From Isurus oxyrinchus (Eukaryota): DNA of 64,000 nt. Position 1 is the stretch's first letter. Each line of letters opens with the position of its first letter. The position numbers and the translations under genes are program-made. A model generated the notes under the pieces. That model did not search any database and had not been told where the DNA came from. It saw only the letters and a list, made by a program, of their open reading frames with translations. Location of the stretch: assembly GCA_026770705.1 (NCBI GenBank), contig JANJGN010000052.1:3596001-3660000 (forward strand), given 5' to 3'. Positions 3,100 through 63,489 of this stretch are shown one piece after another.

Positions 3100-5060
3100 C
3101 AGATGTCACATCCAGTCGTGGACAATTAAACAACTCACTGGAGGAGGAGGCTCCACAAATATCCCCATCCTCAATGATGGAGGAGCCCAGCACATCGGTG
3201 CAAAAGACAAGACTGAAGCATGCGCAACAATCTTCAGCCAGAAGTGCTGAGTGGGTGATCCATCTCGGTCTCCTCCGGAGGTCCCCAGCATCACAGATGC
3301 CAATCTTTAGCCAATTCGATTAATTCCACGTGATATCAAGAAAGGGCTGAAGGCACTGGATATTGTAAATGCTCCAGGCCCTGAAAATATTCTGGCAATA
3401 GTACTGAAGACTTGTGCTCCAGAACTTGCTGCACCCCTAGCCAAGCTTTTCTGGAATTTTCTAGTACAGCTGCAACACTGGCAACTACCCGGCTATGGGG
3501 TACGTCCTGTACACAAAAAGCAGGACAAATCCAACCCAGCCAATTCCCCAGCAGTCTATTCTTGATCATTACTAAAGTGATTGAAGGGGTCATCAACAGC
3601 GCTTGCAAGCAGCACCTGCTTAGCAAGAATCTGCTCACTGACGCTCAGTTTGTGTTCCACCAGGATCATTCAGCTCCTGGCCTCATTACAGCCTTGGTTC
3701 AAACATGCATAAATGAGCTGAACTCCAGAGGTGAGAGTGACTGTCCTTGACATCAAGGCAGCATTTGACTGAGTGTGGCAAATCAAGGAGCCCGAGCAAA
3801 ACTGGAGTCAATGGGAATCGGGGGAAAACTCTCCGCTGCTTGGAGTCATACCCAGCACAAAGGACGATGGTTGTGATTATTGGGGGTCAATCATCTCAGT
3901 TCCAGGACATCACTGCAGGAGTTACTCAGGGTAGTGTCCTAGGCTCAAACATCTTCAACTGCTTCATCAATGACCTTCCTTCCATCATAAGGTCAGAAGT
4001 GGGGATGTTTGCTGATGTTTGCACAATGTTCAGCACCATTCACAGCTTCTCAGATACTGAAGCAAGTTATGTCCATTTGCAGCAAGACCTGGACAACATC
4101 CAGGCTTGGGCTGACAGGTGACAAGTAACATTCATGCCACACAAGTACCAGGCAATGACCAGCTCCAACAAGAAAGAATCTAATTGAAGGTGCAGAAAAT
4201 TTGGATTTATGTTCAAGAGCCAGCCAGGACCAGCAGCTAGGGCGCCAAAGCGTACACATCCTTACGTGAAAACTTAAAAACCTGTACTAAGGGCTCAGTT
4301 GGAAATTTGCAATGAGGAAATGGGAGACACACACACAAGGACACTGGGTGACTCAATCAAGAAATGGGGAAGGTTATTTCACACCGTCCGATGGCCTTGA
4401 ACCACATCCAGTCAGCCCCCGGAAACCTTTTGTATTGAACAAACATAGATTCTTTGCTGTCTCAAAAGGACAATAGCCAGTCTCTGCCCTGTAATTACTG
4501 TACAAGAACACAATTATCAGCCCACCGGAGGATCATTGTGCTGTGGCCTTTGTCTAACTAATACCATTACCTTGTAACTGAGAGTAAAAATATATAAACT
4601 GTGCTCATTTGAACCTCGGTGGAGAAGCGCCTGGACTGCCCAGCGTTTGCTCCCCACATGCGTAATAAAGGAACCACTTGAATATTGCATCTGGAGTCCG
4701 AGTGTTGAAATTTTGTACCAGAATATCCCACAGACCATTCATAACCATCGCCCCTTGACATTCAATGGCATTACCATCAATGAATCCCCCAATATCAACA
4801 TCCTGGGAGTTACCATTGAGCAGAAACTGAACTGGACCAGCCATATAAACACTATGGCTGCAAGAGCAGGTCAGAGGCTGGGAACCCTGCAGACAGTAAC
4901 TCACCTCCTGACTCCCCAAAGCCTGTCCACCATCTACAACGCACAAGTCAGGAGTGTGATGGAATACTCTCCACATGCCTGGATGAGCACAGCTCCAACA
5001 ACACTCAAGAAGCTCGACACCATCCAGGACAAAGCAGCCCGATTGATTGGCTCCCCTTCC
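3100..5060 (+). mobile_element. Degraded CR1-type LINE, reverse transcriptase region, interrupted by a solo LTR
   Basis: ORF fragments TAGVTQGSVLG..FNCFINDLP..MFAD, LQQDLDNIQAWAD, ILGVTIEQKLNW, YNAQVRSVMEY, with stops and frameshifts. Confidence 0.85.
4185..4741 (+). mobile_element. Solo LTR inserted in LINE
   Basis: TGAA...TTCA termini and near-TSD taat/taac, splitting LINE sequence gaatctaa|ccatcgcc; internal TATATAA (~4591) and AATAAA (~4664). Confidence 0.65.
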
Positions 5061-6554
5061 ACAGAGCTAGATAGATTCTTGATTAACAAGGGGGTGAAAG
5101 GTCATTGGGGGTAGGCAGGAATGTGAGGTTGAGGTGACAATCAGATCAGCCATGATCTTACTGAATGGCAGAGCAGGTTCGAGGGACTGAGTGACCTACT
5201 CCTGATCCTAACTCAGATATCCAGATGTTCTCAAAGGCAATTGGGGATGGGCAACAAATACTGGCCTAGCCAGCGACACCAACATCCCTGAAATGAATAA
5301 GAAAAAAATGTATCAATCAATTAAATTTATTGATTAATCGAACTGAAATTCCTCCAGCTGCCGTGGTGGGATTTGAACCCATGCCTTCAAAGCATTCACC
5401 TGGGCCTCTGGATCACTGGCCTAGATCCATTCCCATTGTGCGACTGTCTGCTATCATCATGGCTCTTTCACATCGATGTGGAAGTCCTGATAACAGAAGC
5501 ATTGGACGAGGTACAGTAAGGTGACAAATCAGGAGCTCCATTGCTCAATATGAACGGATAATAAAGATAAATGAACATAAACCTTCCAGTTGCTAATTAG
5601 GGAGTCACTGTGGAGCCCATGAGTCCCTCGCAGCGCTATTGCAACCTTCTGGATCCCCAGTAGGGGACTCGGGGTGCAGCTGTGTCTTCCTCATCATTTG
5701 GAAAAGCCGGAATTGTTCGGGTGCCCCTTCAAACAGGCCAAAGATGCAGTGGGTGATGTCTCCCACAGGCCCTGGGAGACCTCCCCTGCCAATTTGTTTT
5801 GTAGCTTATTCTTCAACTGCGACATTGGATCAGCTTGAAAAAGGGTGAGGCTGAGGCAATACCACCAGGTAAGCGTCTATCCCCTCACACGTCACCCCCC
5901 GACCCCCGTAACCGTCACAGTCCCTCCCATCGTGCTGGAGGAGCATAATGTGCACATTCCCCTCCTTCCAATCAGTCTCCTCCCTTCCTCTCTAATCCTT
6001 GATCTTATTGTGTTCGGGGTTGACATCCCAGTCCTCCTCCCTAGACTGTCTGATGTTGACATCCCAATGCCCCATGTAGACCTGACCTCTCTCCAACTAG
6101 AGGCCCATTGTACTGTGACTTACAGAGACCACCGGCCCCCCTCGATTCCCACCCCCACCCCTACCCTCTATATTACCTGCTCCCCACTGACAGGCTGCAG
6201 ATGCCTCCCCTGACTGGGATTGTGCCACCTGCGGCCTAGTATCAAGCCCCCACCCCCAGGACCGACGTGTGTGAGGGACTGACCACGTCCTGCACACCAT
6301 GCTGGGCACCACCAACCCAGGACTGCCAGGCTCTCCCCACCACACTGGACTGGGACTAGAATAGGCGTGCCAAGCACAGCTCTCTAAATCGTGGCGCAGA
6401 CCCACAGCACTCGCAATGTTTTGTGGCCCGAATCCTTGCTGAGGAACTGCCCAGCACTAAAATCAAAACAACTGCAGATGCTGGAAATCCAAAACAGAAA
6501 CAGAAACAGAAATACCTGGAAAAACTCAGCAGGTCTGGCAGCATCGGCGGAGAA

Positions 6555-7338
6555 GAACTGAGGGAGAGCTGCACTGTCAGAGGTTCAGTACTGAGGGAGT
6601 GCTGCACTGTCGGAGGGTCTGAACTGAGGGAGAGCTGCACTGTCGGAGGGCTTGAACTGAGGAAGTGCTGCACTGTCGGATGGTTTGAACTGAGGGAGTG
6701 CTGCACTGTCGCAGGGTCTGAACTGAGGGAGAGCTGCACTGTCGGAGGGTATGAACTGAGGGAGTGCTGCACTGTCGGAGGGTATGAACTGAGGGAGAGC
6801 TGCACTGTCGGAGGGCTTGAACTGAGGAAGTGCTGCACTGTCGGATGGTTTGAACTGAGGGAGTGCTGCACTGTCGCAGGGTCTGAACTGAAGGAGTGCT
6901 GCACTGTCGGAGGGTCTGAACTGAGGGAGTGCTGCACTGTCGGAGGGTCTGAAATGAGGGAGTGCTGCACTGTCAGAGGGTCTGAACTGAGAAAGTGCTG
7001 CACTGTCAGAGGGTCTGAACTGAGAGAGTGCTGCACTGTCAGAGGGTCTGAACTGAGGGAGTGCTGCACTGTCGGAGGGTTTGAACTGAGGGAGTGCTGC
7101 ATTGTTGGAGGGTTTGAACTGAGGGAGTGCTGCACTGTCGGATGGTTTGAACTGAGAGAGTGCTGCACTGTCGGAGGTTCTGAACTGAGGGAGTGCTGCA
7201 CTGTCGGAGGGTTTGAACTGAGGGAGTGCTGCACAGTCAGAGGGTCTGAACTGAGGGAGTGCTGCACTGTCGGAGGGTTTGAACTGAGGGAGTTCTGCAT
7301 TGTCGGAGGGTCTGATCTGAGGGAGTGCTGCACTGTCT
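6555..7338 (+). repeat. 33-bp minisatellite array (variant unit gagggagtgctgcactgtcggagggtctgaact)
   Basis: About 24 tandem 33-bp units; produces spurious repetitive ORFs. Confidence 0.95.
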
Positions 7339-8068
7339 AAAGAACATTGTACAAATTGCACAAAATTTCATCTGATGCCTGTGTCTCATGCTAACATGAA
7401 GTTCATGCACACAACAGGAATATTTCTCGCTGTTTCTCTGCAGCAAGACAGCTTTGGTATCACACCACCCACTGGCAAGAGTGTGCAGTTACAATGTGAC
7501 ATGTTTACATTGGAAATTTCTATTATAAAGATGGACAGAGGAATTCATCTGATTGGAAAACGTGACAACAGGAAGCTATGTCTTTGAGCCAAGTATTTTG
7601 CAGCAAAACAAGAATTTTAATCTTTAAATATCTACAGAACAGGCTGAGCATTTTAATCACTTGAGTTAATCAATGTAATTTTATTCATAAGCCAAATGCT
7701 TCTTACAATCTATCGCAGCATGAAAAAGGTGCAGCATTCAGAAAGCACATTCCAATCAGAGAACAGAGTTTAGCAACGTCACATTTCTGTTCATTCCTAT
7801 TCGATGAACAATTTCAAAAGGAAATTGGACGGAAATTGGAAATAAATTTGCAGGGATACGGGGATAGAGCAGGGGATGGGACTGAGTGGATTGCTTTACA
7901 GAGAGACAGCATAGACTCAATGGGCCAAATGTCCTCCTCCATTGCTGGAATGACTCGATGATACGGAGACGATTATAACCAGGACACTGACCAGTTTCAT
8001 TACAACTTAACACAACATCACACGTTATTTGTCCGCACTGACTGACCAGATTGTTGCTGTACAAAGCT

Positions 8069-8208
8069 TCAAACAGTCTGTCGACTTCCTTTCACTGTTT
8101 GTCTCTCCCAGACACAGACTCCAGCGATAGTGATAACCACAGCCACAAGGAATATCACAGCTCGTATTCCCAGGATCAGGATCACGTGCAGAATCTCTCC
8201 TCCACTGT
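8069..8208 (-). CDS. Siglec gene C terminal exon: transmembrane segment with Arg + short cytoplasmic tail (activating type)
   Basis: Minus-strand acceptor tttctttctgtgtgttctctag, phase-1 start compatible with the upstream Ig exons. Encodes (D)SGGEILHVILILGIRAVIFLVAVVITIAGVCVWERQTVKGSRQTV*; Arg codon at 8164-8162; no Tyr motif. Confidence 0.8.
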
Positions 8209-9322
8209 CTAGAGAACACACAGAAAGAAATCATCACTGACTCTCCGCTTTCAATCTCTCACTCTGGCTGAACAATCAAGCTTCATATCACTGCAACATT
8301 TGCTGTAATATTGACCCATCCACTGGGATTCAATGTGGAATGAATGTTTTCACTGTAAACACTCTAAGAGTGGACAATCGGAACTTTCCCCTTAGCGTGG
8401 AACATTGGTGAGAATGGATCATTGTGCTGTTGGACTCCCTGTCCAATGTTTCTCTCTATTGCTGTGTACAGGATTGTGCTGTAGAAAATTCTGGAAACGT
8501 TTAGTGCCGGGTGAAAATCCATCTCGGACGTGTGTGCAAATCGGGCAGGATCGGGATGGACTCCCCCACGGACTTACACCCCCCGCTTAATAAACAGTTC
8601 CAATCTTTACCCAGAGAGAGGGGAGAATATGGAACTCGCTCCCACAGGGAATGGTTGAGGTGAATAGTAGGAAATTAGGAAGTGAAATTGCTTGAAAAGC
8701 TTGGAGATGCAAGGGTTAAGTGTTACCGTGCTACCACTGGTGGGAGAGTGTAACTACAGCGTGACGTTTACATAGGCAATCCCCATTATGAACATGGACA
8801 TCATGTGAAAAATGGGCACTGGAAAGCTGAGAACTTGATGTAAGCTTTTCAGCAACAGGAATTCCCTTCCTAAACCTCTCCACTTCCCTCTTATTCTCAG
8901 ATACTCAAACAAAATTTCACACAAAATCACGTAAGGAGGAATTGGGACTGGTGACTGGTCAAAGAGTTAGATTTCAGGAAGGTTCTTAAAGTAGGATAGA
9001 GAGTTGGAGAGGCAGAGAGTATCTGTGAGTATCTCTGTGCATCTGAGTGTCTGTAATAGACTTTGCAATTTCCATATTCTTCCATAAATATGAAAGGGAA
9101 CACAAATCCCAGAATCCAGGTCAACTCTCCGGTGCAGCACTGAGGGAGGTCAGGTAATCCACAGGGCAGTATGTGATAGTGTGTTTGTTTGTGAGTGTGT
9201 CTTTGTGTGTGCTCATAGATGTGGGATTGTGTGTCTGCAGGTGTCTATTTAAGGCTGGATATTTATGTGTGTTTTTGTAGTGTTTCAATCTGAGAGAGAT
9301 GTTGAAGTTTATCTTAACTAAC

Positions 9323-9474
9323 GTTCCACAGTGATGGTTATGAACCCCTCCACTGCTCCATGTTCATTCTCTGAGCACACTGATAGTCTCCAGTGTCCCT
9401 GGATGTAACGTGAGGAATCACCAACCACAGCTCATTGTTGGAACTTGTTCTGTTCATTGTGATATTCAGATGTC
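9323..9474 (-). pseudogene. Degenerate 3' half of a C2-set repeat exon in gene C
   Basis: Homologous to the 282-nt exons of gene A (MNRTSSNNELWLVIPHVTSRDTGDYQC) but 5'-truncated, with a 1-nt deletion after the Cys codon; donor GTTAGT retained. Confidence 0.8.
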
Positions 9475-9796
9475 AGGACCGGACTCAACAAGACAGATTG
9501 CAGGTTTACCAACAGAAAGTGAACAACAATTTATATTTAAAGGGAAGAGAGTGCTGGTTAATCAGCAAGTGGTCTCTGATTGGAGGAGGTGTTGCCATGG
9601 AAAATAATGTGTGTGAGATGTAAAGTTTAGACAGCTTGTCTCTTCATTCAGCAACAATCAAATAAAGATCAGTTAACTTCTATCGACTGTGAAGCACTTT
9701 GAGAGGCAGAGAATGTGGACACTGAGAACGGGCTGCACTGTCAGAGGGTCAGCGCTGAGGGAGTGCTGATGTAGAATGAAGGGTGTCTGTACTTAC

Positions 9797-10093
9797 CTTG
9801 CACAGTTAGTACGAGGGTCCGCTCCGATGCAACAGATGGATATCTCACTCTGCAGCTGAGAGTGTGTCCGTGGTGTTTGAGTGATGGGATCAGGGTCAGA
9901 ACAGAAGTATAGGTCAGAGTGACACCATGCTGAGTTACAGTGTTTGAGACTGATCCAGGTACGTCAGTGGGAGTGTCCCAGGTTAAGACAGGTGCTGCTG
10001 TTCCATTGCACGTTGTGTTGAAGGTGCAGCTTACATCCACAGGCTTTCCTGCAATAATTTCAGCAGGGAATATCGTGGGTTTATCTGTGAAAT
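9797..10093 (-). CDS. Siglec gene C domain-2 C2-set exon
   Basis: 297 nt, AG/GT, phase 1-1; DFTDKPTIFPAEIIAGKPVDVSCTFNTTCNG...HHGHTLSCRVRY..TVQ, nearly identical to the gene A and B exons. Confidence 0.9.
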
Positions 10094-10379
10094 CTAACAG
10101 ACAGAGAATGGATCCTTTTAGAGAAATATAATGTGAAGCATCAGTTCAAATAGAAATCACAGTCCCACAAGAAAAAGCACTTTTACAAGGATGATATCAG
10201 ATCTGAGAGGTTACAATGATTAGGAGAGAATTTCCTGCTTTGAGACTTTGGTGTTTCTGTCTCTCAGCTTAATACACGTTCACTCCGAGACACTTGAACT
10301 GATAATAGTGGGTGAGGGTGGTGGAGCAGACCAGAGTTTGGAGTGCACTAACCCATCAGTCCCTCAGCGATCTGGGCCA

Positions 10380-10545
10380 TTTTTTACTTTGCAATTTGTG
10401 GGAGCTTGCTGTGCGCAAATTGGCTGCTGTGTTTCTCACATTACAACAGTAACTACAATTCAGGAATCAGCTCATTGGCTGTGAAGTGATTTGGTCCATG
10501 CTGAGGTGGTGAAAGGTGCTACAGAAATGTGAATCTTTCTTCTGT
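10380..10545 (+). mobile_element. Deu-SINE 3' fragment
   Basis: tttgtgggagcttgctgtgcgcaaattggctgc...gaaaggtgctacagaaatg. Confidence 0.6.
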
Positions 10546-10821
10546 CGCTAAGTCAGACTTTGAGACAGGATTAGAGAGATCGATAGGAGTGGATAACCTG
10601 ATAACATTGATGGACACAGTCAATACATTTAATCATTGATATTAAAGTGAGTATTAGAGGTTGCTTTAGGAGTGAATTGGAAGCGATCACCAGGTTATTG
10701 AGAATCAGACAGTGTGTTATAATAAGCTGTGTTTTGTGTTAATACGTAAACGTCACAGTTTGTGTTATTTCCCATTGAGTGTTGAATGTGAATTGTTGAG
10801 TAATTATAACACAGCACTTAC

Positions 10822-11187
10822 CAGAAACGTGAACCTGGGTTACAGGGTAATAGTTATGGCTCGGACCATTGTCAAATTCTATTCTGAAAAAATAAGGTCC
10901 CGCATCTTCCCGTCTGATGTTGTTTATAATCAGGGAACAGTCGCCATCTTTCAGGTCTCCAGACAGCCGGGTCCGATGGTGGAACCGTGGTAACTCGTGA
11001 CTGTGATCCTTGGAGTGAAAGGCTATAGACGATGTTCTCCATTCCTCATTATTAAACCAGACTCCACCTCGCGGTTGGTTTTCCAGACACGATGGATAAC
11101 TGTAATGACATGGAATCTGTACACAGGAACATTCCTGCACTGTCACCTCTCGTGGATTGTCACCTTTCCACTCTTGCGAGGGTTCAG
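10822..11187 (-). CDS. Siglec gene C proximal V-set exon
   Basis: 366 nt, AG/GT, phase 1-1; SCVQIPC, DCSL and EDAGPYFFRIE with the essential Arg. Confidence 0.9.
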
Positions 11188-11239
11188 CTGGGGAGAGAAA
11201 TCTCAATATTTAACTCTGAATGGTTTGTGGATCCACTGA

Positions 11240-12040
11240 ACCCGATATTTACAGATGAGGCTGAATTGGGGGGATGGTCAATACTGAGGAGAATGGCAAC
11301 AAATTATATTGTCAGGAAGAATAGAAAAACAGGATATAATTTAAATGGAGACAGGCTGCAGAATGCAGTACAGAGGGATCTGGGTGTCCTGGTACATGAA
11401 TCACAGAAAGTCAGCATTCAGGAACACCACGGAATGAGGAAGGCAAGTGGAACGTTGGCCTTTATTGCAAAGGGATGGAGTATAAAAGGAGGGAAGTCTT
11501 GCAACAGCTGCACAGGGTGTTAGTGAGATTGTAACAGGATCATTGTGTACAGGCAGTTCAGAGAAGCTTCACTGGGCTGATTCCTGGGATTAAAGGGTTT
11601 GTCCTGTGAGGAAATGTTGAGCAGGTTGGGCCTGTATCCATTGGAGTTTAGAAGAATGAGGGGTGACCTTATTGAAACATATCCGATTCCGAGGGGGCTT
11701 GACAGGGTGGATGCTGGGAGGATGTTTCCCCCTCGTGGGGGAATCTAGAACCAGGGGGCACAGTTTCGGAATGAGGGCTCTCCCATTTAAGACTGAGATG
11801 AGGAGGAATTTCCTCTCTCAGAGGGGCGCTAGCCTGTGGAATTCTCTTCCCCAGAGAGCAGTGGAGGCTGGGCCATTGAATAGACTCAAGGCTGAGTGAG
11901 GCAGGTTTTTGATCGACAAGGGAGTCAAGGGTTTGGGGGACAAGCAGGAAAATGGAGTTAAGGCCGCAACCAGATCAGTGAGAGCAGGCTGGAGGGACCG
12001 AATGGCCTGCTCCTGTCCCTATTTCTTATGTTCCTACATT
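11240..12040 (+). mobile_element. CR1-type LINE 3' fragment
   Basis: QRDLGVLVHES and VGESRTRGHS..MRRNFLSQR..LWNSLPQ motifs plus a 3' tail. Confidence 0.85.
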
Positions 12041-12917
12041 CTTACCTTCTTAAAATATTAAAGCTGCAGAATAAACATGCAAGTGAATGACCCGCTCGAC
12101 CCACCTTCCATCTGGGGGTCCCATGGGGAGGACCCTTCCTGAGCCAGATCCACCAGCCAACATGGTCTGGATCTGAGCACAGGAGACACGGGGGGGAGTG
12201 ACTAACAGGCTCCTTGTGACAGGCCCCGTCTGTCCAATGGCTGGCTTTCAGCTGCCAAGGCCAGAGTTGTCCTTGCTAAAACTGGCTCAGGACAGGCCAG
12301 GACCCCTGTGCAGACCCCCTCCAGCGCTGCAGCCTCTGTACAAACCCCTCATGCGCTTGTGGAGAGACACAAACAAGGCTGCACATTACCGAGGAGAATC
12401 CCCTCTACGGACTAAGGGGCTGACTCATCACCTTAAACTCAGCAAATGAGGAGGCTCTCGCTCGGTATTGGGGCTTGGCATTGGCTCAATAAAAATAAGA
12501 GCTGTTTCAGCACAGTGGCTGGGGTGGGAACCTGATTGGAGGGATTCAAACATGGAGTTCCGGGAAAGATAGGAACGGATTCGGGAGATGGAAACACGTT
12601 GCAGGACTTTGGAGGGGAAAGAGAGGCTGGGGATGGGACGGGAGATTACACAGACAGTGTGAGGGGTGGAAGGTGTAGTGGGGAGGAGACACTTCACTCA
12701 GGGGGGAGGTGTCATCACCCCTCAGCTCGGTTTACGTTACAGCTATGATGTGGATTCAATCACACACAATAAGCTCATGGATCTGGGAGCAGAAATAGAC
12801 AAATCATTAAAAATAGTGACGCTGGTTAACACGGCCAAAAAACAAGCAAATCAAACACTATTATTTCCCATTGAGTGTTGGATGTGAATTGTTGAGTAAT
12901 TATAACATAGCACTTAC

Positions 12918-13283
12918 CAGAAACATGAAGCTGGGTTTCAGGACGGTCGTTGTATCTATTCCTGCTGTCAAAATCTGTTCTGAATAAATAATATCCTGCA
13001 TCTTCCCGTCTGATGTTGTTTATAATCAGGGAACAGTCACCATCTTTCAGGTCTCCAGAAAGCCGGGTCCGATGGTGGAACCGTGGTAACTCGCGACTGT
13101 GATCCTTGGAGTGAAAGGCTATAGACCATGTTTCCCAATTCCTTCTCATATACCAGATTCCAACAGGTGATCTCGGTACTAAATATGATGGGTAGCTGTA
13201 ATGACACGGAATCTGTACACACGAACCTTCCTGCGCTGTCACCTCTCGTGGAGTGTCACCTTTCCACACTTGTGGTAGTCCAG
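12918..13283 (-). CDS. Siglec gene C distal V-set exon
   Basis: 366 nt, AG/GT, phase 1-1, open frame; EDAGYYLFRTD with Arg retained; loops diverged from the other V exons. Confidence 0.85.
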
Positions 13284-13675
13284 CTAGGGGGAGAAATATC
13301 AATATTTAACTCTGAATGTTTTGTCAATCCACTAGACTCAAAATCCACCCCCTCCATCACTGGCGCACAGTGGCTGCAGTCTGGACTCACAATGAATGCC
13401 CCAATGTTTCACAACACATTGAAGAGAATCCTGGATACAGGAGTGGACAAGTTCATTCTACATTGGCTCGTGGCCCTCAGGAACCTGTTTAGTGAAGCCA
13501 GTCTTCCACCCAACACAGTGTCTACAAGACACACTAATTGAAGTGAGTTCACTGCTGTATTTACAAACTAGGACAATGGATTAGGAGCCTTCAGAATTCC
13601 CCCATTATCACCATCATGAATCATGAATTGGCCTAGCTGTCCTAGATCCTCAGTGTCTAAGGCAGTGGTTCCTAT

Positions 13676-14604
13676 TGTGATGAAAGTATAATAATTTTCA
13701 TAATATTTTATGGTATATTGTGAAGTAGGTTTATGGGGGTACGCATGATGGGTCTGCATGTGATTTAAGTACATTTGGAGTTAATTAGATTGGAAGTTTA
13801 AAATGATCAAAAGGTGCTAGGTGCTTGACATGCTATTGAGTAAACATGGATGCTGCTTAGCATGGAAGGTATGAAGAGAATTTGCATTTTTATTTCAATG
13901 AAGGGGTTGTTGGATTTCAAAGGAATCTTAGTTTGTTTACAACTAGCCAGATAAGCAAGACTAAGGAATGTGCTTATTTTTCTCAAAGGCTCCTGGCAAT
14001 ATGGGCACCACAAAAGAATTTGTTATGAGGAAGATACAGTTTCAAAAACATTTGGAACAATAGAATTTTCATGTTACAAAGAGAGAAATATATATCTATC
14101 AGGGAGAATGAAAGGCTATGTGTCAGAATGCCATGTAAGATCTAACACGAGTGTGTGATATAGTCTTAATGAAACCACTAGCATTTGTGCACAAGCCCGC
14201 TATCCAACAGAACTGAAGTTGGGGAAAAGCCACTTGGAATTCCTCTGTGCAGGGTATTGCTTTTATATTGTGTTAACTTGCTGGGTTTGTTTTAAATATA
14301 AAGTCTATTTTTGGACCGTTGCCTTAAAGGGAGTGTAACTGGGAGTCAGGTTATTTCGGAATTTTAAGAATTATTATTAAAATGGTAATTGTAGTGTCAC
14401 GTACATGCATGATATCATTTCTTCTGAGAGCAAGTATTTTAATTTAATTTTCAAATCTCTAAAGTTCCTAGAGTAATTATTGCTTCTGAATTCAGTGCAC
14501 ACATCTCATAATAAATACAAATTGCAAAATCATTATGATCGTGTGACCACCTTTCTCTCATGGACTTGGTCTGCCTGGCACACATCACCTGTCAAGTGAT
14601 AACA
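13676..14604 (+). mobile_element. Solo-LTR-like element
   Basis: TGTGATG...ATAACA termini; similar to 42775-43668 and to inverted copies at 18.8 and 23.2 kb. Confidence 0.55.
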
Positions 14605-14605
14605 C

Positions 14606-15929
14606 TGTTGTAATATGCCTTTCAGGGATAGCAGCATGACATCACTCGAGGGGAAGTGTGTCATGTGATTTTTAGGAACTGGGGATAGATTAAGTAAGTT
14701 CTATGTGTATTTGTGTGTGTTAGGCATAAGGTCTATCTTTAAGTTCAAGTTTAGTTTGATTTCTGTATTTGTGTGTTAAGAAAGGGGGAAACTTGACTTT
14801 TAGTTTCATTTTTATAGAAGCCAGCAATCTAATGAGGTTTGGTGACTGTTGAAGGGAAGTCAAAACAAATACAAGGTGTAAGAAACTGTGCTGTTGCCTG
14901 GCAACAGTGATGCAGAGGGAAGGACCCATAGAGACAGAGAAAAACAGAAAAGTACTTTCAGTTCTGTTGAAAGGAGTTGCCAGGAGAAGCAGCAAAGGAG
15001 CGGGACAGATAGTCAGTCCCAAAGTAAAGAAGAAGCAAAAACCATCGAGTGGAACAGGAGAAAGGGCCAAGAAGACCTTCTAGTCCAAGGAAGATCAGGA
15101 ATCTGGACAAGGTCCTGTTAAGTCAAGTTAAGGTTGAGGTTCAGAGGAGGGATCCAAGCTAAAAGAGAATGGGCAAAAGGACACAGACCCAAAGCAAAAA
15201 AGGCTTATGAGAAGCCAGAAGATCCTAGGAGACACCACAGGTTGGTGACTCATTACTACGGCCATGTGAAGCCATGGTGTTCCATTGACACGGCTGAGCA
15301 TTGGAGAGACAGGGCGTGGAAGGAAGGCTGAATGCACATGGCGATCCAGGGGGCAGGAACATGGGAAGGAGAGTTTGAAATAGTGAAAGTGGACCCGTGT
15401 GGAAGGTGTCTGAGTGAAAGTGTCATGTTGGAGAAGATTCCAAAGAGAGCACTTGGTGAGTAGAGATTGGAAACTCTCATGTGAAAGAAGCAGTTTCGTT
15501 AGACCAGTTGCCTCACGGTGTAACAAGCGTCTAGAGTCAGTTGAGGAGGGACCCGGAGCATTTGTTCCAAGTGGGTTCTGTCACTTGGTTTCAGAATGTG
15601 GTGTCCCTGACCCCAGGTCGTCTACTGTTTTACATCGACTGTGTACTTAGTGTGAACATGAGAGTATAAGTTAGTTATTGTAATTGCGTTATCCTTATGA
15701 AACTGTAAATGTATAGGTCTGGGTGAAGGAGTAATGTCATATAGTTTGTCTTTCCTAGTTTAATAAATGTTTTATTCTTTTGTTAGAAGTTCATCAGATG
15801 ACTCCTGTGACTCTGTTCAGTAGCCGCACTCCACATTCCTAAATAAAAAATAAAAGTTAGGACCTATCAAGCTGAGCTCCACCCTGGGATCTGACTTGCC
15901 CAGTAGTAACATCAGCTGGGATGATAACA
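14606..15929 (+). mobile_element. Second LTR-like element
   Basis: TGTTGT...ATAACA termini, AATAAA motifs near the 3' end, no coding capacity. Confidence 0.45.
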
Positions 15930-16564
15930 CCATCCAGTCCAAGTTTCACTTTGGTCTGTGAGCAGAACACAGCTCACACAGTTTAGCCGCAGGTGTCTCC
16001 CAGCTTTCTATCCTTGTATATCTGTTCTCATGTCCCTGTTCTAAATAACTGAACCCAAAATGTGTTTACCCAATTCCGTATCAGTGGCTGGTGCCTTTAT
16101 ATCATTATAAAAACACAACATGGTGATCAGCGGTGACCAAACATTCTGGCAGCAAGATTCAGTACAATATGAAAATGATACCAGAAACCTCTTATTCTCT
16201 GTCCTTCTCAAAGATCCATCCCTGCAGCAGGAGCCTTAAGAGTTATTGATGTGGGGCTTAATTTATCAGATTGTAGAATGATCTGGAAGAGAAGGAAGTC
16301 ATTTGGCCCATCGAGCCTGTGCTGGACCTTTGAAAGTTCTGTCCAATAAGTCCCACTGTCACCTCTGCTCTCTCCTCCACAGCCCTGCAAAATGTCTCCT
16401 TCAAGTATTTATCCAGTTCCCCTTCTGAAAGTTCCTGTTGAATCTGCTTCCACCGCCCTTTCAGACAGTGAGTCAATGGTCTCTCTCTGAGCTGCAAAGT
16501 GCTCAGATTCTGTGAAATTTAAACTCTGCAGCAGGTCAGAGACAATTATGATAACTCAGAATAT

Positions 16565-17055
16565 TGCACTGTCAGAAGGTCAGGGCTAAGGGAGTGCTGC
16601 ACTGTTGGAGGGTCAGTACTGAGTGAGTGCTGCACTGTCAGAGGGTCAGTGCTAAAGCAGTGCTGCACTGTTGGAGGGTCAGTAGTAAGGGAGTGCTGCA
16701 CTGTCAGAGGGTCAGGGCTAAGGGAGTGCTGCACTGATGGAGGGTCAGTACTGAGTGAGTGCTGCACTGTCAGAGGGTCAGTGCTAAGGAAGTGCTGCAC
16801 TGTTGGAGGGTCAGTACTGAGAGAGTGCTGCACTGATGGAGGGTCAGTTCCGAGGGAGTGCTGCACTGTCAGAGGGTCAGTGCTAAGGAAGTGCTGCACT
16901 GTCAGAGGGTCAGTGCTAAGGAAGTGCTGCACTGTACAGAGGGAGTGCAAGCCTGACAGAGGGTCAGTAATGAGGGAGTGTGAGACTGACAGAGGGTCAC
17001 TATTGAGGATGTGCTGCACAGTCGGGGGGGTCAGTACTGAGGGAGCGCTGCACTG
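16565..17055 (+). repeat. 33-bp minisatellite array
   Basis: Tandem gagggagtgctgcactgtcagagggtcagtact units. Confidence 0.95.
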
Positions 17056-17200
17056 CCATAGGTGGTTTCTTTCAGATGACATGAGAGAGAGGGTTAAACC
17101 CACTGAGACAAGACTGACACTAACGAGGCTGCTCATTAATTTAACCCTATCAGTGCCAGTAAATGATGTGAGGATGTCTTCTGTTTCCATTTCTCTGTAG

Positions 17201-17449
17201 GGTAAACAGAACGTGCTGATTTCTGAGCCCCGGAACACAACCAGAGACACAACTAGTGAGGGGGAGACCCCAGCTCCCCGGGGTCTCTCTGAAGGTGCAT
17301 TGGGAGGCGATGCTGGACATTGGCACATCGACAATCCCGACGGCCTTCTCTACGCCAATCCCGAAGTATTGAGGATGTCCAGTGATGATGGGTCTGTCCA
17401 CAGGGAAGAGGAGACGGAATACGCACAGATCAGGTTCGAGCATAACTGA
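17201..17449 (+). pseudogene. Orphan Siglec terminal cytoplasmic exon (LLYANP + TEYAQI)
   Basis: Paralogue of exon 42235-42483 with intact acceptor and open frame; no plus-strand TM or Ig exons upstream in the window. Confidence 0.75.
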
Positions 17450-18029
17450 ATGAGAAATGGGGAGTGGGAGTGAGGAGGTGTGGGGGTGGGGGTAGTGATT
17501 GAGATTCCTGGGAACAGGAAACAACCCACTGGGGGAGAGGGGGAGAGAGGGAGGAAGGGATGGAATTGGGCTGCGGTTGGTGTGGTTTGGAATGAAATGC
17601 TTCTCCAGAGAGGACTGGATGCTGAGCCACTGGGGATAGAGATTCACTGTCTCTCTCTGTCTGTCTCTCTCTCTCGCTCTCTTGTTCTCTCTCTCCCTCT
17701 CTCTGTCTTTCTTTCTGTGTCTGTCTCTCATTCTCTATCTCCAGCTCCTCCTTTAAGATGCCCGTTAATAACTGACTTTGTTGACTCAGCTGTTGGTCTC
17801 CTGTCCCTTATATCTCCTCATGTGCCTCAGAGTCAGGTGAAGATATGACTAACAATTCCCGGATGAGCCTTGGGACATTTTGCTACATTAAAGGTGCTAT
17901 ATAAATGCAAGTAGTTGCAGTAAGTCTGATCTGCTTCGATTAACAATGGAACCACAAAGGCTCCTTCGACAGGGCGTGTGTGCAGGAGGATCCCAATAAA
18001 TACATTGTGCTGTGAGATTTTTAATTCTT

Positions 18030-18490
18030 ACATCGAATGTGGTTGTCACTGGTGATGCCAGCATTAATGCCCATCCCTAATTGCACTTGAGAAGGTGGTG
18101 GTGATCAGCCTTCTTGACCCGCTGCAGTCCATGTGGTGTAGGTACACCCACAGTGCTGTTAGGGAGGGAGTTCCAGGATTTTGACCCAGTGACAGTGAAG
18201 GAACGATGATATATTTCCAAGTCAGGATGGTGAGTGACTTGGAGGGGAACTTCCAGGTGGTGGTGTTCCCATGTGTCTGCTGCCCTTGTCCTTCTAGATG
18301 GTAGAGGTCGTGGGTTTGGAAGGTGCTGTTGAAGGAGCCTTGCTGAGTTGCTGCAGTGCATCTTGTAGATGGTACACACACTGCTGCCACTGTGTGTTCG
18401 TTGTGGAGGGAGTGAATGTTTAATGTGGTGGATGGGGTGTGGATCAATCGGGCTGCTTTGTCCTGGATGGTGTCAAGCTTCTTGATTCTG
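18030..18490 (-). mobile_element. CR1-type LINE 3' end
   Basis: Minus-strand ORF CTIYKMHCSNS..RSFTVTGSKSWNSLPN, the same tail as at 44.4-44.7 kb. Confidence 0.8.
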
Positions 18491-18618
18491 TGCTTTGTAT
18501 AGAACTGATTTAAAGAGACAGTCCCAGTCGTTGGTCTAAGATTACAGTGGGCTCTGTGTCTGTGCTACACTGACTCTCTGCTATATGATAACCACAGTGT
18601 GATATTGTGTTATTACAG

Positions 18619-18700
18619 GAGAAAGACAGCGATGGAGGAGAGAGTTTCAGGGACCAGTGACATTGCATTGACCCCCAGTCCACTCTCTGTGAAGCACCAG
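18619..18700 (+). pseudogene. Orphan Siglec first cytoplasmic exon
   Basis: 82 nt AG/GT exon RKTAMEERVSGTSDIALTPSPLSVKHQ, paralogue of 40601-40682; no TM exon upstream. Confidence 0.75.
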
Positions 18701-18835
18701 GTACAGGAGCTGTTTACACTCACTCCAAAGCTTCACTCTCAGTGTGTAGACAACACATGTCCCAGATTCCCAGCCCAGTTACCCACTGATTTGTACCTGT
18801 GGAGTCAGCAATGGTTCAATATCATGCTGTCTCTC

Positions 18836-19592
18836 TGTTATGACACAGAAACTGGTAAAGGCTGTTGTTTAAAATCCCAGAGGGAAACTTTAAACAACTG
18901 TCATAACCTATATTTCCCAGTGGAATGTTTGAGATGCATCTCTAAATTCAGGAATAAGACCACCAGTTCTTGAGATGGGTTTATATCAAACTACATGAGA
19001 CATTTATTAATTTTCACAAGTTAATCATATGCACATTGGTACAAGCTAGTACTATCATAACTTTTTAACAAATTCCCAAACTAAAGTCCTCTAAGACAAC
19101 CCATAGACTTTAAGCAGATTCCAAGCGAAGCATTTTCACCTCACAAATTCCAAATGAGGTTCCTTTCACTTTGGTTCCTTTGCAGACAGGTGCAGGCTTA
19201 CAGCTGCTTTGATGTTACAAGCCTCTGCTCTGCACACACAAAACTGCTCAAGTTATACCCAGCTCTTCTCTTTGAATGTAAATTCTCATTGTATCATCAG
19301 GACCTTTGATCTCCATCTCTTCTAACTATAATTCCCGTTTCATAGTATCAATTTTATTAGTAATATAAACATTGATTGGTTTAAGAATTCACTCCCAGGC
19401 TTTGAATCCTCCTTTTAAAAATGCAATATGCCTCTTTACCTCTTTGTTTACATCTCAAAACTACTATACATCAAAGTACCCAGACCGGCTGGCTTTAATC
19501 CAATTAAAACACACACACACACACCCACAGACTAAACCTCTGTTTAAAAAGACAATTTCCAATTACAATACATACATTAATAGATTCATAAC
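18836..19592 (-). mobile_element. Solo-LTR-like element (inverted)
   Basis: Similar to 23212-24038 and to the reverse complement of the 13.7 and 42.8 kb elements. Confidence 0.55.
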
Positions 19593-19721
19593 GCTCAGTC
19601 TCTGACCCTTCATCTCTCTCTCTCTCTCTCATCCTCTCTCTGATTACAAGATTCATGTTATTGAGCCTCACACCAGGCACCTGAGTGCAGAATCCAAGCC
19701 GACATTCGCCAGAGCCATTAC

Positions 19722-20005
19722 CGAGGGAGTGCGAGACTGACAGAGGGTCAGTACTGAGGGAGTGCTGCACTGTCAGAGGGTCAGTACTGAGGGAGTGCTG
19801 CACTGTCAGAGGGTCAGTACTGAGGAAGACCTGTACTGTCGGAGGGTCAGTACTGAGGGAGCGCTGCACTGCTGGAGGGTCAGTACTGAGGGAGCGCTGC
19901 ACTGTCGGAGGGTCAGTACTGAGGGAGTGCTGCACTGTTGGATGGTCAGCATTGAGGAAGTGCTGCACTATCGAAGGGTCAGTACTGAGGGAGCACTGCA
20001 CTGCC
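19722..20005 (+). repeat. 33-bp minisatellite array
   Basis: Tandem units preceding the terminal exon, as in gene A. Confidence 0.9.
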
Positions 20006-20148
20006 ATAGGTGTTTTCTTTCATAAGACATGTGAGAGAGGGTTAAACCCACTGACCCACGACTGACACTAACGAGGCTGCAGAATATTTTAACCCTATCA
20101 GTGCCAGTAAATGATGTGAGGATGCCTTCTGTTTCCATTTCTCTGTAG

Positions 20149-20397
20149 GGTAAACAGAACGTGCTGATTACTGAGCCCCGGAACACAACCAGAGACACAA
20201 CTAGCGAGGGGGAGACCCCAGCTCCCCGGGGTGTCTCTGAATGTGCAGTGGGAGGCGATGCTGGACATGGGAACCCTGACAATCCCGACGAGCTTCTCTA
20301 CGCCAATCCCCAAGTCTTCAGGGTGCCCAGTGGTGATGGGTCTGTCCACAGGGAAGAGCAGACGGAATACACCCAGATCAGATTCAAGAGAAACTGA
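20149..20397 (+). pseudogene. Second orphan Siglec terminal cytoplasmic exon (LLYANP + TEYTQI)
   Basis: Open frame GKQNVLITEPR...TEYTQIRFKRN*, in frame with exon 18619-18700. Confidence 0.75.
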
Positions 20398-21539
20398 GTG
20401 TGAAAAAGGCAGAGGGGGTCAGGAGGTTTGTGGATGGTGGCAGGGATGAAGATTCTTGGGAACATGAGACAACCCACTGGGGGAGAGAGGGAGGAAGGGA
20501 CTGAATGGGTCTGTGGTTGGTGTGGTTTGGAATGAAATGTTTCCCCAGTGACGACTTGATGCTGAGTCATTGGGGACAGAGATTCAGTNNNNNNNNNNNN
20601 NNNNNNNNNNNNNNNNNNNNNNNNNNNNNNNNNNNNNNNNNNNNNNNNNNNNNNNNNNNNNNNNNNNNNNNNNNNNNNNNNNNNNNNNNNNNNNNNNNNN
20701 NNNNNNNNNNNNNNNNNNNNNNNNNNNNNNNNNNNNNNNNNNNNNNNNNNNNNNNNNNNNNNNNNNNNNNNNATTAACTGGCTTTGTGAAATCAGCTTTT
20801 TGTCACCTGTCCCTAATACCTCATTATGTGTCTCTGAGATGGATTTATATGTAGGTAACAATCCCCTGAAGAGATTTGGGACAGTTTGTTACATTAAGTG
20901 TGCCATATAAATGCAAGTTGTTGCAGGAAAGTTGATTTGCCTCGATTCAGAATGGTAATTCGGAGGGTCCATCTACAGGGCGTGTGTGCAACAGCCTCGC
21001 AATAAATGCATTGCACGGCAACAACTAAGCATGTCCTTTGATGCTGATGCATCCCAGTACTGCTTTGTGGACACATCACAACCGAGGGACTGCCTGACTG
21101 CGTGCAGCCAACATGGCCGAATAGTAATTAGCAGAAATGTGATGTCACTGAACTTTGTTGACATTTCAGAAAGTGCTTTCTGAATTCTGCAACTTGTTTA
21201 TTCTGTGATAGATTACAAGAAGCCTTTGCATTTTCTGTAATATTACATTTATTGTCACAAGGGATTGAAATGCCCAGACACCACCACCTGGAAGTTCGCC
21301 TCCAAGACACACATCATCCTGATTTTGAAATATATCGCCGTCCCTTCACTGCCACTAGGGTCAAAATCTTGGACTTCCTTCTCTAACTGCATTGTGGGTG
21401 TACCTACACCACATGGACTGCAGAGGGTCCGGAAGGCAGCTCACCACCACCTTCTCAAGGTAATTAGGGATGGGCCATAAATGCTGGCCTAGCCAGTGAT
21501 GCCCACTTCCCATGGAAGAATGAATATATAAAATATAAA

Positions 21540-24480
21540 GTTGGAACAAAATGAATGAAGTTATAGCACAAATAGAGATTAATGGGTACGATAAGATGGA
21601 CACTGCAGAGAGTTGGTTGCAACGTGACCAAGGTTGGAAATTGAAAATTGAAGAATATTTGGAATCTTTGAAAGGATAGGAAAAATGAAAAGGAGGTGGG
21701 GTAGCTCTCTTAATAAAAGATGAGACCTGTAAAGTAGTGAGAAATGATTTTGGCTCAGATGTCAAGATGCACAGTCAGTTTGGGTGAACATAAGGAATTG
21801 CAAGGGAAAGAAATCACTGGTGGGTTGGTTTATACTCCCCCCTGAATGTAGTTACACTGCAGGGGTAGATTATAAATCAATACATGAGGAGGTTTATGAG
21901 AAAGGCACCACATTAATCATGGGAGTTTTCAATCGTCATATGGATTAGCCAAATCAGATTAGCAAATGTAGCTTTCAGCGAGGTTATACAGATTGTATTC
22001 AGGACAGTATTTTAGAACAATCCAACATGGAACCAACCAGGGAAGAGGCTGTTTTAGTCCTGGCAATGTTTAATGAGACAAGACTAATTAACATCTCATT
22101 GTAAAGGACCCTCAAGGGAAGAGTAATCATACGGTGTTGAAATTTAATATTCAGTTTAGAAACTTGGTTCTTAAGCTAGTGTCATAAACTTAACTAAAGG
22201 CAATTACAAGGGTTAAAAGTAGAGTCGGCCCAAGTAGAGTGGGACAGCAGGTTAAAGTGGCGGGGGGGGGGTGTAGATGAGGAGTAATAGGCGTCTAAAG
22301 AGATGTTTCATAAATTCCAATGAAGATATTTTCCAGTAAGAAAGAAAGAATCTATAAAAAGGATGGAGCATCGGTGGCTAACTCAGGAAGCTAAGGACGG
22401 TATCCAATTGTGAGATAAAGCCGGCAATGTTGGGATGCTGAGTGATAGGCTGGAGATTGGGAATATTTGAGAAACCAGAAAAGTGAGGGGAGAAATATAA
22501 GGAGGCAGAAATGATGATATGAGAGTAAACTAGCAAGAACCATAAACAATGACAGTGAGATGTTGTACATTAAAATAAGAGAGAAGCTACAGTAATAATG
22601 GGACACATAGAAAATCAGACTGGGGAATTAATAATGGGAAACAAGGAAATGACAGAGACTTTCAACAAGAATTTTGTGTCTGTCTTCACAGTAAAAATCT
22701 CTAAAACCATCCCAATAGCAGGAGAAAGTCACGGTGCAACAAGGAGGGAGGAACATAAAACAATCACTATCACCAGAGAAAAAGTATTAAGAAAACTAAT
22801 GAGACAAATGCTGACAAGTCCCATGGAGCAGACGGCCTGAACGTGAGGGTATGAAAGGAAATGGCTGCAGAGACGGTGGATGCATTGGTTGTAATCTTTC
22901 AGAATTCCTTAGATTATGGGAAGGTCCCAGCGGATTGGAAAAACATAAATGAAACACGTCTGTTCAATAAAGGGAGGAGGCAGAAAGCAAGAAACTACAG
23001 GTCAGTTAGTCTAATATCTGTCATTGAGAAAATACCAGAATTCATTATGAAGGAGGGAGCAGCAGGACATTTAGAAAACCATAATTCAATCAGACAGAGT
23101 CAACATGGGTTTGTGAAAGGGATATCATGTTTGAAAAAATAATTAGATTTCCTCGAGGATGTAACAAGTGGATTGGATAAAGTGGAACCTGTAGATGTGG
23201 TGTATTAGGGACTATGACACAGCCAAGGGTAAAGGCTGAGTTGTTCAAATCCCAGAGGGAAAATTGAAACAACTGTCATAACCCAATTTTGCTATTTGTA
23301 ATTAAGAGATGAAGACTTTGATTTCAGTAGGAATAAGACCACCGAGGATTGTGGGTTTTTTATATAAAACTAAATAGACCATTTATTAACTTAACAACAA
23401 AATTAACATATACACATTGGCTACAAATAACTACTATAATAACTTTTTAACAAATCCCCCAACTAATCATCCCCATGTAAATCTCTACTAAGGCAACAAT
23501 GAACCATTGACATAATATAGACACCAGGCAAAGCACATTTGACATTACGAATTCCGAATGAGGTTCCTTTGCAAGTTGGTTGGAGGCTACAGGCTGGTTC
23601 GGTCTGAAATGCTCCTGCCTCACACACACAAACTCCTTCCTTTATATAGCTAGCTTTCCCTTTGAATGTAAATTTTCCATTGTATCACTCGGACTTCTGA
23701 ACTCCAGCTCTTCGAACAATAAAACCCCCTTTCATAGCACCAATTTCATTAGTAAGTTCAAGAAAAAACACATCTTTTGGCTCCTTCTAACTAGGTGCAA
23801 GATTTTACCCCCAGTCTGGAATGGTTTATTCAACAATTGCAAATGAACACTTTACTGTTCTCCTCACAATTCACCCAATTAACATCTCAAAACTACTAAA
23901 CATCAAAGCACACAGACCAGCTGGCTTTAATCCAATTAAGACACACACAGACACACACCTATACATGGACCACCACTAGAATTCTATTTTAAATAATAAT
24001 TTCCAAGCATATTTCACACACAAATATCTCTTCATGACACTGGATTTCCAAAAGGCATTCGATAAGGTCCCACATCAAAGGATACTGCACAGGGTGAAAT
24101 TGGATGGTGTTGGAGGGGATATATTAATATGGATAGAGGACTGGCTAACTGACAGGAAACAGAGAGCCAGGATAAATGGGTGATTTTCAGCTTGGTAAAC
24201 TGTAACTAGTGGAGAGCCACAGGGATCAGTGCTGAGGCCTCAACTAGTCACAATCTACATTAGTGACTTGGATGAAGGGACTGACTGTACTGTAGGCAGA
24301 TTTTCTGACTGTGCGGTGAAGATAGGTAGGAAATATATAAGCTGGGCAGGAAAGCAAATTGTGAGGAGGACATAAAGAGGCTGCAGAGGGAGATAAATAG
24401 TTTCAGTGAGTGGATAAAATAATGAGTGGATGGAATATAAGGAGTGAAAATGTCAGGGTGTCCAGCTGATCCTACTTGTT
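21540..24480 (+). mobile_element. Degraded CR1-type LINE (endonuclease + RT), interrupted by an LTR-like insert at ~23212-24038
   Basis: Fragments ETVDALVVIFQNSLD.GKVPADWK, NYRSVSLISV, QSQHGFVKG; the VYLDFQKAFDKVPH motif region is split by the insertion. Confidence 0.8.
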
Positions 24481-24578
24481 CTGTTCTTATATTCTTATAC
24501 AGACACAGGGTTTACTGACAGTGCACAGCAAAGTGCTGTTCACTCACTTTGTTCCAACTTCCTCATTTTGTCTCACAG

Positions 24579-24696
24579 AGACACATCAGCTCTTTCTAAT
24601 TAAATACACAGAGGGAGCAGCACAGGAAGAGGTCATTCAGCCCAAGCAGATCGTGTGGGCAGTTCCTCCCCAGGCGAGCAGTCGGACAGGTCCTGG
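24579..24696 (+). other. Probable 5' non-coding exon of Siglec gene A
   Basis: Ends at a consensus donor TGG|GTAAGT; segment conserved in gene B (ending 53430); 5' boundary uncertain. Confidence 0.5.
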
Positions 24697-25129
24697 GTAA
24701 GTAACGGAACGATTGGAATTCACTTCCACGACCAACACCGTCCTTTGCTGATGTTGTGACTTTATAAAGACAGATTCCAATGATTGATGCCTTTGAAAGA
24801 TTTCTACTGATTATTGAGATCTGGGTGTGAGGCTCAAGTCTGTTGTACAGAACATCTTTCTAGCTCAAGGGACATGAGCTTGGGGATGGCCTGAGGTGGT
24901 GAAAGCGGCTATAGAAATGCAAGTCCTTCATTGTTTTTCTTTCTGAAAGCCTTGTAACTCTCTGCAGAGCACCAATCATCCCACAGAGAATCAAATTAGT
25001 CTGTGAAGATATTGTCTAAAAGCATTTCTGATCTCTCGAGAGCATTCGGACAAGAGGTGAAGTCTCATTAACTCCTTTCTCTTTCAGAACTTCAGAGTTA
25101 GAAGCTGAGGAAATATCTGAGAGTGGACC

Positions 25130-25169
25130 ATGATTCGGAAATCTTACTTCCTCCTGTCACTTCTCCAAG
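25130..25169 (+). CDS. Gene A leader exon (signal peptide)
   Basis: Exon starts at 25088; accATG MIRKSYFLLSLLQ, phase-1 donor G|GTAATA; joins to VGLS|QEW. Confidence 0.85.
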
Positions 25170-53863: not shown

Positions 53864-53903
53864 ATGATCAGGAAATCTTACTTCCTCCTGTCACTTCTCC
53901 AAG
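53864..53903 (+). CDS. Siglec gene B leader exon
   Basis: Exon starts at 53824; ATG MIRKSYFLLSLLQ G|GTAATA; upstream non-coding exon donor at 53430/53431. Confidence 0.85.
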
Positions 53904-57058: not shown

Positions 57059-57271
57059 GTAAGTATGGACATCCTTCATTATACATTCGCTGGAACAGTC
57101 TATATTGTGCACAGCAGGATCTCATAGAAAGGTATTCTGATGAGAACCAGATCATCTGTAGTTTAGGGAAAAACACTAACCAGAAAACAGTTAATGACAG
57201 TTTCTGAACATTAACACTGGAGCTTTTTTTTCCAGCCAAGAAGCTGATAGAGCAGAGCATCATTCACAATA

Positions 57272-59350: not shown

Positions 59351-59351
59351 C

Positions 59352-63451: not shown

Positions 63452-63489
63452 GTGAGTTACACAGAATTGAACGTTCTCGTGTTATTAGC

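Follow-up and report, generated by a model that had tools for sequence, protein, structure and literature searches.

The minus-strand segment 8208-8069 of the window, the 64,000-nucleotide stretch of Isurus oxyrinchus DNA analysed here, is a real, spliced, terminal exon that closes a Siglec-like gene (hereinafter gene C) and encodes a transmembrane (TM) helix with an intramembrane Arg followed by a short tail. Comparison of the gene with its neighbours and with its relatives in other sharks makes it fairly probable that this exon is the anchor of an activating Siglec-like receptor, for which pairing with an adaptor, an activating output and sialic-acid binding would be expected.

Structure of the TM/tail exon

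The TM/tail exon (8208-8069, minus strand, phase 1) is delineated as the terminal coding exon by its sequence and frame, by a splice joint and by the C-termini of homologous proteins. The acceptor AG (8210-8209) follows a 21-base pyrimidine tract, tttctttctgtgtgttctctag (8209..8231 together with the AG, minus strand), and the splice joint ends exactly there; in the acceptor context ...ttctttctgtgtgttctctag|AC, the leading AC finishes a split codon, as required by phase 1. Translation from 8206 on the minus strand gives SGGEILHVILILGIRAVIFLVAVVITIAGVCVWERQTVKGSRQTV*, that is, a stalk of 5 residues, (D)SGGE, the hydrophobic span ILHVILILGIRAVIFLVAVVITIAGVCVW and the tail ERQTVKGSRQTV, with the stop codon at 8071-8069; the remaining two frames are closed or non-hydrophobic. 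The top 19-residue Kyte-Doolittle window of the exon scores 2.95, and the intramembrane Arg, encoded by CGA at 8164-8162 (minus strand), occupies position 8 of the 26-residue span VILILGIR...VCVW. The span has an acidic flank on the outside (DSGGE) and a basic one on the inside (ERQTVKGSR), which fits a type I (N-out/C-in) orientation. The tail consists of 12 residues and contains neither tyrosine nor an ITIM or ITAM.

Because it does not begin with a start codon of its own, the exon is missed by ORF-based tracks; at 8069-8208, the list of ORFs of at least 70 aa contains a different frame only. A tblastn search found no paralogue of the exon within the 64-kb window, the uncharged TM exon of the neighbouring gene A (39809-39905) included. 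The matches returned by this search were rejected as chance matches to frames of a 33-bp minisatellite. A search of the ESM Atlas with the 45-aa peptide was uninformative (best look-alike 0.80, clusters unnamed). The preliminary description had postulated, from the letters of the DNA, an exon hidden from the ORF track, a strong pyrimidine-rich acceptor with a phase-1 start, an Arg-containing transmembrane helix and a sequence unrelated to the gene A TM exon, and it holds on all these points.

The minisatellite itself occurs, in both orientations, in the introns and flanks of all Siglec-like genes of the window (6400-7340, 16560-17060, 19720-20000, 40900-42050, 50520-50780 and 57270-62120), and its frames, ...TVRGSVLRECC... 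or ...PTVQHSLST..., yield spurious ORFs of up to 426 aa. Among the other repeats are LINE-type reverse-transcriptase-like ORFs downstream of gene C (3400-5100) and downstream of gene A (43669-44350, plus strand), the latter copy being 85-86% identical to the former.

Splicing and transcription

Read contigs were compared with the window over positions 7560-13550 in four contig sets, X1, X4, X7 and X8; X1, X7 and X8 represent three studies under two organism labels, and the runs were guessed to be RNA. In each of these three sets, a joint connects the C2a donor at 9797 to 8208, with GT..AG on the minus strand (depth 399 in X1, 146 in X7 and 192 in X8); on the plus strand, the skipped segment ends in CT..AC. 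Position 9797 is the exact phase-1 donor of the C2a exon, GTGCAAG|gtaagt, and the junction codon, G+AC, encodes Asp. The joint between the V and C2a exons (10822 to 10093) is present in the same three sets. An X1 contig that spans 7894-8185 at a depth of 547 is unbroken through the stop codon, differs from the window at 7970 and 7975 only and carries the Arg codon CGA unaltered. This read-through past the stop shows that the TM helix and the tail belong to one terminal exon, as had been proposed; the suggested check on whether the exon is ever spliced in is answered by the joint from 9797 to 8208 in X1, X7 and X8. An exon-internal donor at 8095 (ACA|GTGAAA), which would make the exon non-terminal, was considered and rejected, given that there is no outgoing joint and the contig passes the stop. 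The 3' UTR covers at least 7894..8068 (minus strand), as delimited by the same X1 contig and by X7 contigs over 7562-7804, and candidate poly(A) signals are recognizable in the sequence at 7685-7680 (AATAAA) and at 7657-7652 and 7621-7616 (both ATTAAA), all on the minus strand. The X4 set has zero depth on the TM/tail exon, so expression is not universal.

It could be argued that the exon is an artefact, either a chance hydrophobic frame or one with joints that come from a processed DNA copy instead of RNA, all the more as the runs were labelled RNA by guess. This explanation is extremely improbable: in three studies, two canonical GT..AG joints coincide exactly with the predicted exon ends, exon depth in the X1, X7 and X8 contigs is 10-100 times the intron depth, contig sets of the X1/X7/X8 type comprise 66-155 Mb vs 1.6-4.1 Gb for DNA runs, and the RefSeq models of six shark genera terminate in the same sequence. 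Together, the canonical joints at the predicted ends, the excess of exon over intron depth and the small size of the contig sets indicate cDNA and argue against a DNA artefact.

Very high contig depth (up to 110,000) and numerous back-joints were observed at 9732-9768 and 11360-11960 in four runs; this depth reflects dispersed repeats in the gene C introns and not expression of gene C.

Organization of gene C

Self-comparison of the window combined with Pfam searches yields a map of three Siglec-like genes (A, C and D). Gene C lies on the minus strand, head to head with gene A, in the exon order V'-V-C2a-TM; in the similarity searches, this spliced model was queried one exon at a time. The V' exon (12918..13283, minus strand, 366 nt) encodes a V-set domain (Pfam V-set, 3.5e-14; X1 joint) with the motif YLFRTD; the V exon (10822..11187, minus strand, 366 nt) encodes another V-set domain (V-set, 2.4e-10; Ig_CD22, 1.4e-09; joint) with the motif YFFRIE; and the C2a exon (9797..10093, minus strand, 297 nt, phase 1 to 1, donor G|gtaagt) encodes a C2-set domain (C2-set_2, 1.1e-08; joint). 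Both V exons match Ig_CD22 (PF24518; 1.4e-09 and 2.7e-09), and all Pfam matches are above the curated cut-offs. The F-strand Arg motif is kept in both, as PYFFRIEFD in V and YYLFRTDFD in V'; in Siglecs, the Arg of the YFFRxE motif on strand F binds the carboxylate of sialic acid, a role that would be predicted here. By its sequence, with V-set, C2-set and F-strand Arg, gene C is Siglec-like, and its product would be predicted to bind sialic acid.

In X1, V' is joined to V (11176->12918) at a depth of 84 vs 620 for the V-C2a joint. Tandem V-sets are likewise present in great white P0021 and P0025 and in cloudy catshark P0002; in the tandem relatives, the second V often begins with AEPSQ and not with the signal-peptide end VGLSQ.

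The splice from C2a to the TM exon bypasses a relic of a C2b exon (9315..9474, minus strand), which consists of the 3' half only, with a 1-base loss at 9375 that splits it between two frames. The relic was also evaluated as a used exon and rejected. The contigs that lie on 9323-9474 have an additional A after 9375 and, from 9474, continue into ESFPASNLTW, the missing half of a full C2b, which is absent from the window. The extra A and this run-on indicate that the contigs derive from paralogues and that the relic is a dead exon. Gene C is homologous to genes A and D between about 9180 and 13531, the latter boundary being 250 bases upstream of V'; the TM exon, about 1 kb outside this block at the 9180 end, therefore lies in unique DNA.

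Conservation of the cassette in sharks

A phmmer search with the 45-aa peptide encoded by the exon (hereinafter the cassette) against 1.84e9 representatives (E<=1e-3) retrieved 10 proteins, all from sharks, 9 of which were matched at the very C-terminus; the remaining one, P0010, looks like a mis-model. Further proteins, from great white and small-spotted catshark, were added by a word search with the P0001 TM part and by cluster look-ups. The cassette is thus represented, in predicted proteins, in six shark genera from three orders: Carcharodon (Lamniformes), Scyliorhinus and Mustelus (Carcharhiniformes), and Chiloscyllium, Hemiscyllium and Rhincodon (Orectolobiformes). Skates, rays, chimaeras and squalomorphs gave no phmmer match with this 45-residue query, the reach of which is limited.

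Conservation of the Arg among homologous exons, which had been put forward as a test of the original proposal, is complete: the residue is invariant in 14 of the 14 distinct cassettes from the six genera. Altogether, 14 columns are invariant among these cassettes, the Arg included, namely L..ILGIRA.IF...V.....G.CV and one tail Lys; the tails of the homologues have 4-12 residues and are Tyr-free. The junction ...VQ|D|SGGE in P0001, P0012-P0015 and P0017-P0025 is the same as the one predicted for gene C.

The closest relative, great white XP_041037141.1 (P0021), has the architecture leader-V'-V-C2a-TM and is identical to gene C at 88% of positions in V', 97% in C2a and 96% in the TM/tail part. 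Eight relatives are complete, with either leader-V-C2a-TM or leader-V'-V-C2a-TM (P0014, P0016, P0018, P0019, P0021, P0022, P0025 and P0028), and carry the leader MIGKSYFLLSLLQ, which is that of great white and catshark relatives; gene C, unlike the leader-bearing RefSeq relatives, has no visible leader. The TM/tail exon is already contained in automatic RefSeq models of other sharks. Four such RefSeq (Gnomon) models show an exon order like that of gene C, namely XP_041037141.1 ('Siglec-12 isoform X1') and XP_041037236.1 (P0018), both from great white, XP_038669862.1 ('Siglec-14 X2', small-spotted catshark, P0016) and XP_072325011.1 (cloudy catshark, P0001); their names are automatic only. These models are 82-96% identical to gene C in the TM/tail part, up to 97% in C2a and up to 88% in V'. 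The gene C cassette differs from all great white copies in having L instead of Q before ILGIR and R instead of G after WE. In the literature collection that was searched, no paper on activating Siglec forms of sharks or on these RefSeq models turned up. In P0001, Ser replaces the sialic-acid-binding Arg (YHFSIE); loss of this Arg is frequent among mammalian Siglecs.

The neighbouring genes and signs of conversion

Gene A, on the plus strand, starts with the leader MIRKSYFLLSLLQ (25130-25168, leader search), which is followed by a V exon (from about 28637) and a C2a exon (29934-30209), both mapped by self-comparison and Pfam, by about nine C2b exons that are 92-96% identical and arranged in units of approximately 1 kb (31152-38996), by the TM exon WTVGLFTAGIMLSVFLAGIFIFICV (39809..39905), which has no charge inside the helix and continues with RK and a gtaagt donor, and by the last coding exon (42247..42483), which encodes LFYANI, an ITIM pattern, and TEYAQI, an ITIM-like/ITSM pattern. 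Judging from their order and strand, these exons presumably belong to one transcript, and gene A, with its uncharged TM helix, LFYANI and TEYAQI, has the predicted features of an inhibitory-type paralogue. Gene D (plus strand) starts with a leader of the same sequence (53864-53902, leader search) and continues with V, C2a and C2b exons, at least two of the latter (62213-63459), up to the window edge. The C2b arrays of genes A and D are products of recent tandem amplification of exon plus intron.

Two orphan copies of the last exon (17213-17449 and 20161-20397, both plus strand) are 68-78% identical to the tail exon of gene A; they keep TEYAQI or TEYTQI, and the ITIM is altered to LLYANP. These copies sit between genes C and A, and no plus-strand Ig exons precede them; they are probably what is left of rearranged genes.

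The ectodomain of gene C is closely similar to that of gene A, with protein identity of 90% in V and 94.6% in C2a, and the similarity is uneven along the gene: identity to genes A and D is 94-97% around C2a (9765-10344) vs 86-91% around V (10327-11248), and dS is 0.014 for C2a vs 0.23-0.29 for V (Fisher p 1e-3 and 2e-4). The high identity extends from C2a into the flanking intron. This distribution suggests a recent conversion tract that would cover C2a and not V, with duplications of different ages as the alternative. The dN/dS ratio of the gene C V exon is 0.23-0.32, which does not appear to be the pattern of free decay.

One cassette behind several ectodomains

By Pfam make-up, the cassette terminates three kinds of ectodomain. 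The first is formed by Siglec-type V/C2 domains, as in gene C; the second contains at least four Ig_2/Ig_3 domains and no Siglec V-set (P0004 and P0005, named "CD22-like"); and the third consists of two domains (P0007 and P0009, named "SLAM family member 9-like"). Neither the V nor the C2a exon of gene C shows similarity to P0004, P0005, P0007 or P0009 at E<=1e-3, and the TM parts of the same four proteins match the gene C cassette at 1e-11 to 1e-17. This combination is best read as an exon shared between receptor families through movement from one to another. The cassette thus ends two further kinds of Ig receptor besides the Siglec-like one, and this, together with its strong conservation, points to one shared partner chain. 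The discovery of such a chain would put the reported absence of the FcR gamma chain in cartilaginous fish to the test.

A bolder scenario, which we consider quite unlikely in its entirety, is that the Arg-TM/tail exon was shuffled among at least three Ig families, stayed near-constant in three shark orders and docks a chain other than FcR gamma, possibly an undescribed one. If it were true, the question of how activating/inhibitory pairing originated would become open to direct test at the root of the jawed vertebrates.

Proposed activating function and alternative interpretations

A basic TM residue couples Siglec-14, -15 and -16, as well as KIR and LILR receptors, to a separate signalling chain. 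By analogy with these Siglecs and other activating paired receptors, pairing of the Arg with an adaptor is expected in gene C. In the proposed mechanism, the last exon would supply a short stalk, a single helix with the Arg about one-third in from the outer face, and the 12-residue Tyr-free tail; the partner of the buried Arg would be an acidic residue that a separate signalling chain carries in its membrane helix; the receptor would require this chain to arrive at the surface; and a ligand bound by the Siglec-type V domain would elicit an activating signal, opposite to that of the ITIM-type gene A. The depth of the Arg in the membrane is between the typical FcR gamma-type and DAP12-type depths, and the reserve of the preliminary description with respect to the adaptor was justified, in that an Arg about one-third into the span does not discriminate between adaptors. 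When the span was examined for a conserved helical face that includes the Arg, the 100-degree moment did not exceed that of shuffles (p=0.76 for the whole span and 0.67 after ILGIRA); with no one-sided conservation along the helix, a specific helix-helix interface gains no further support.

The cassette might alternatively be functional with the Arg acting without an ITAM chain, through a YxxM-type (DAP10-like) or shark-specific partner, as an ER-retention/assembly check or in receptor pairing. To our knowledge, in all well-studied families of jawed vertebrates, a basic TM residue combined with a short tail leads to DAP12, FcR gamma, CD3 zeta or DAP10, and this precedent speaks against a non-ITAM role. 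In favour of such a role, the 14 invariant columns, with Gly, Cys and Lys among them, exceed the needs of one basic residue, the position of the Arg, eighth among 26 residues, is not a clean match to any adaptor class, and the FcR gamma chain was reported not to be found in cartilaginous fish (PMC4016189, PMC5742104). On the other side, the papers reporting this absence rest on pre-2014 shark data, and Siglec-14 goes with DAP12 (PMC4042635). On balance, we hold a non-ITAM role to be improbable and favour the adaptor-coupled activating receptor.

The activating interpretation also presupposes a complete receptor. A leader like those of genes A and D is found nowhere on the minus strand of the window, either by tblastn or by blastn with 1 kb around the gene A leader, the query matching only the plus-strand copies at 25130 and 53864, and a scan of 13285-27000 for an ATG-hydrophobic-donor pattern revealed no convincing substitute. 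The sequence ATGGAAG|gt (12105..12111, minus strand) could serve as another first coding exon, one that encodes no signal peptide: the leaderless great white proteins P0015 (ME|AEPSQ...) and P0024 start with a first coding exon that corresponds to this position in gene C. The site lies between V' and V, within a repeat-rich stretch. RefSeq relatives that start without a signal peptide are P0012, P0013, P0015, P0017, P0020 and P0024. With no leader exon found, the product of gene C may fall short of a complete surface receptor, and the gene could then be a transcribed, non-productive partial duplicate that left its leader behind, the cassette being functional only in complete members of the family elsewhere. 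Its spliced RNA would in that case code for leaderless Ig domains followed by a C-terminal anchor. The end of the A/D homology at 13531, the restriction of the A/D leader to the plus strand, the unconvincing scan and the match of ATGGAAG|gt at 12111-12105 to the leaderless great white models all agree with this explanation. Nevertheless, it appears rather unlikely: the four exons of gene C are all open, the dN/dS of the V exon is low enough to argue against decay, three runs show precise splicing at high depth, and V' still opens with GLPQ, the sequence in which the signal peptide usually ends. Moreover, the nearest great white relative, P0021, has a complete leader-V'-V-C2a-TM structure, and the contigs, which cannot show transcript starts, fill every bin up to 13550 in X1, as if transcription began further upstream; the missing exon may be a leader with another sequence than the A/D one, or may lie inside the gap at 20589-20772.

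Comparison with known paired receptors

Activating Siglecs and receptors with Arg or Lys in the TM helix are already well known; the noteworthy features here are a cassette common to three receptor families and a paired-Siglec locus in a shark. Most of what is known of paired activating and inhibitory Siglecs comes from primates, in which the pairing is interpreted as a defence of the host against pathogens that take advantage of the inhibitory members. In the shark window, near-identical ectodomains, opposite membrane/tail modules and a putative conversion tract together make up a paired build, and this points to a paired Siglec design that is either very old or has repeatedly arisen.

In several respects, gene C resembles the activating members of the human pairs Siglec-14/Siglec-5 and Siglec-16/Siglec-11: its V-set plus C2-set ectodomain is near-identical to that of an ITIM-type neighbour, its TM helix contains a basic residue, its tail is short, and it shows possible signs of partial conversion, here in the contrast between the dS values of C2a and V. 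Gene conversion is known for SIGLEC5/14 and SIGLEC11/16, Siglec-14 associates with DAP12, and the human conversion covers the first two domains (PMC4042635, PMC5701461). Unlike the human pairs, gene C belongs to a cartilaginous fish, possesses a tandem V'-V, and has the apparent tract over C2a and not over V; no sequence relationship of its TM exon to the mammalian Siglec TM exons was detected.

A further parallel is provided by macaque activating KIR, which reportedly took over the TM/tail of KIR2DL4, a module that then determines the adaptor, FcR gamma and not DAP12 (PMC8102735). One Arg-bearing TM/tail module has been recombined onto different ectodomains there as it apparently has been in sharks; unlike the macaque KIR module, which is confined to one family in one primate lineage, the shark module is found in at least three Ig families and in three orders.
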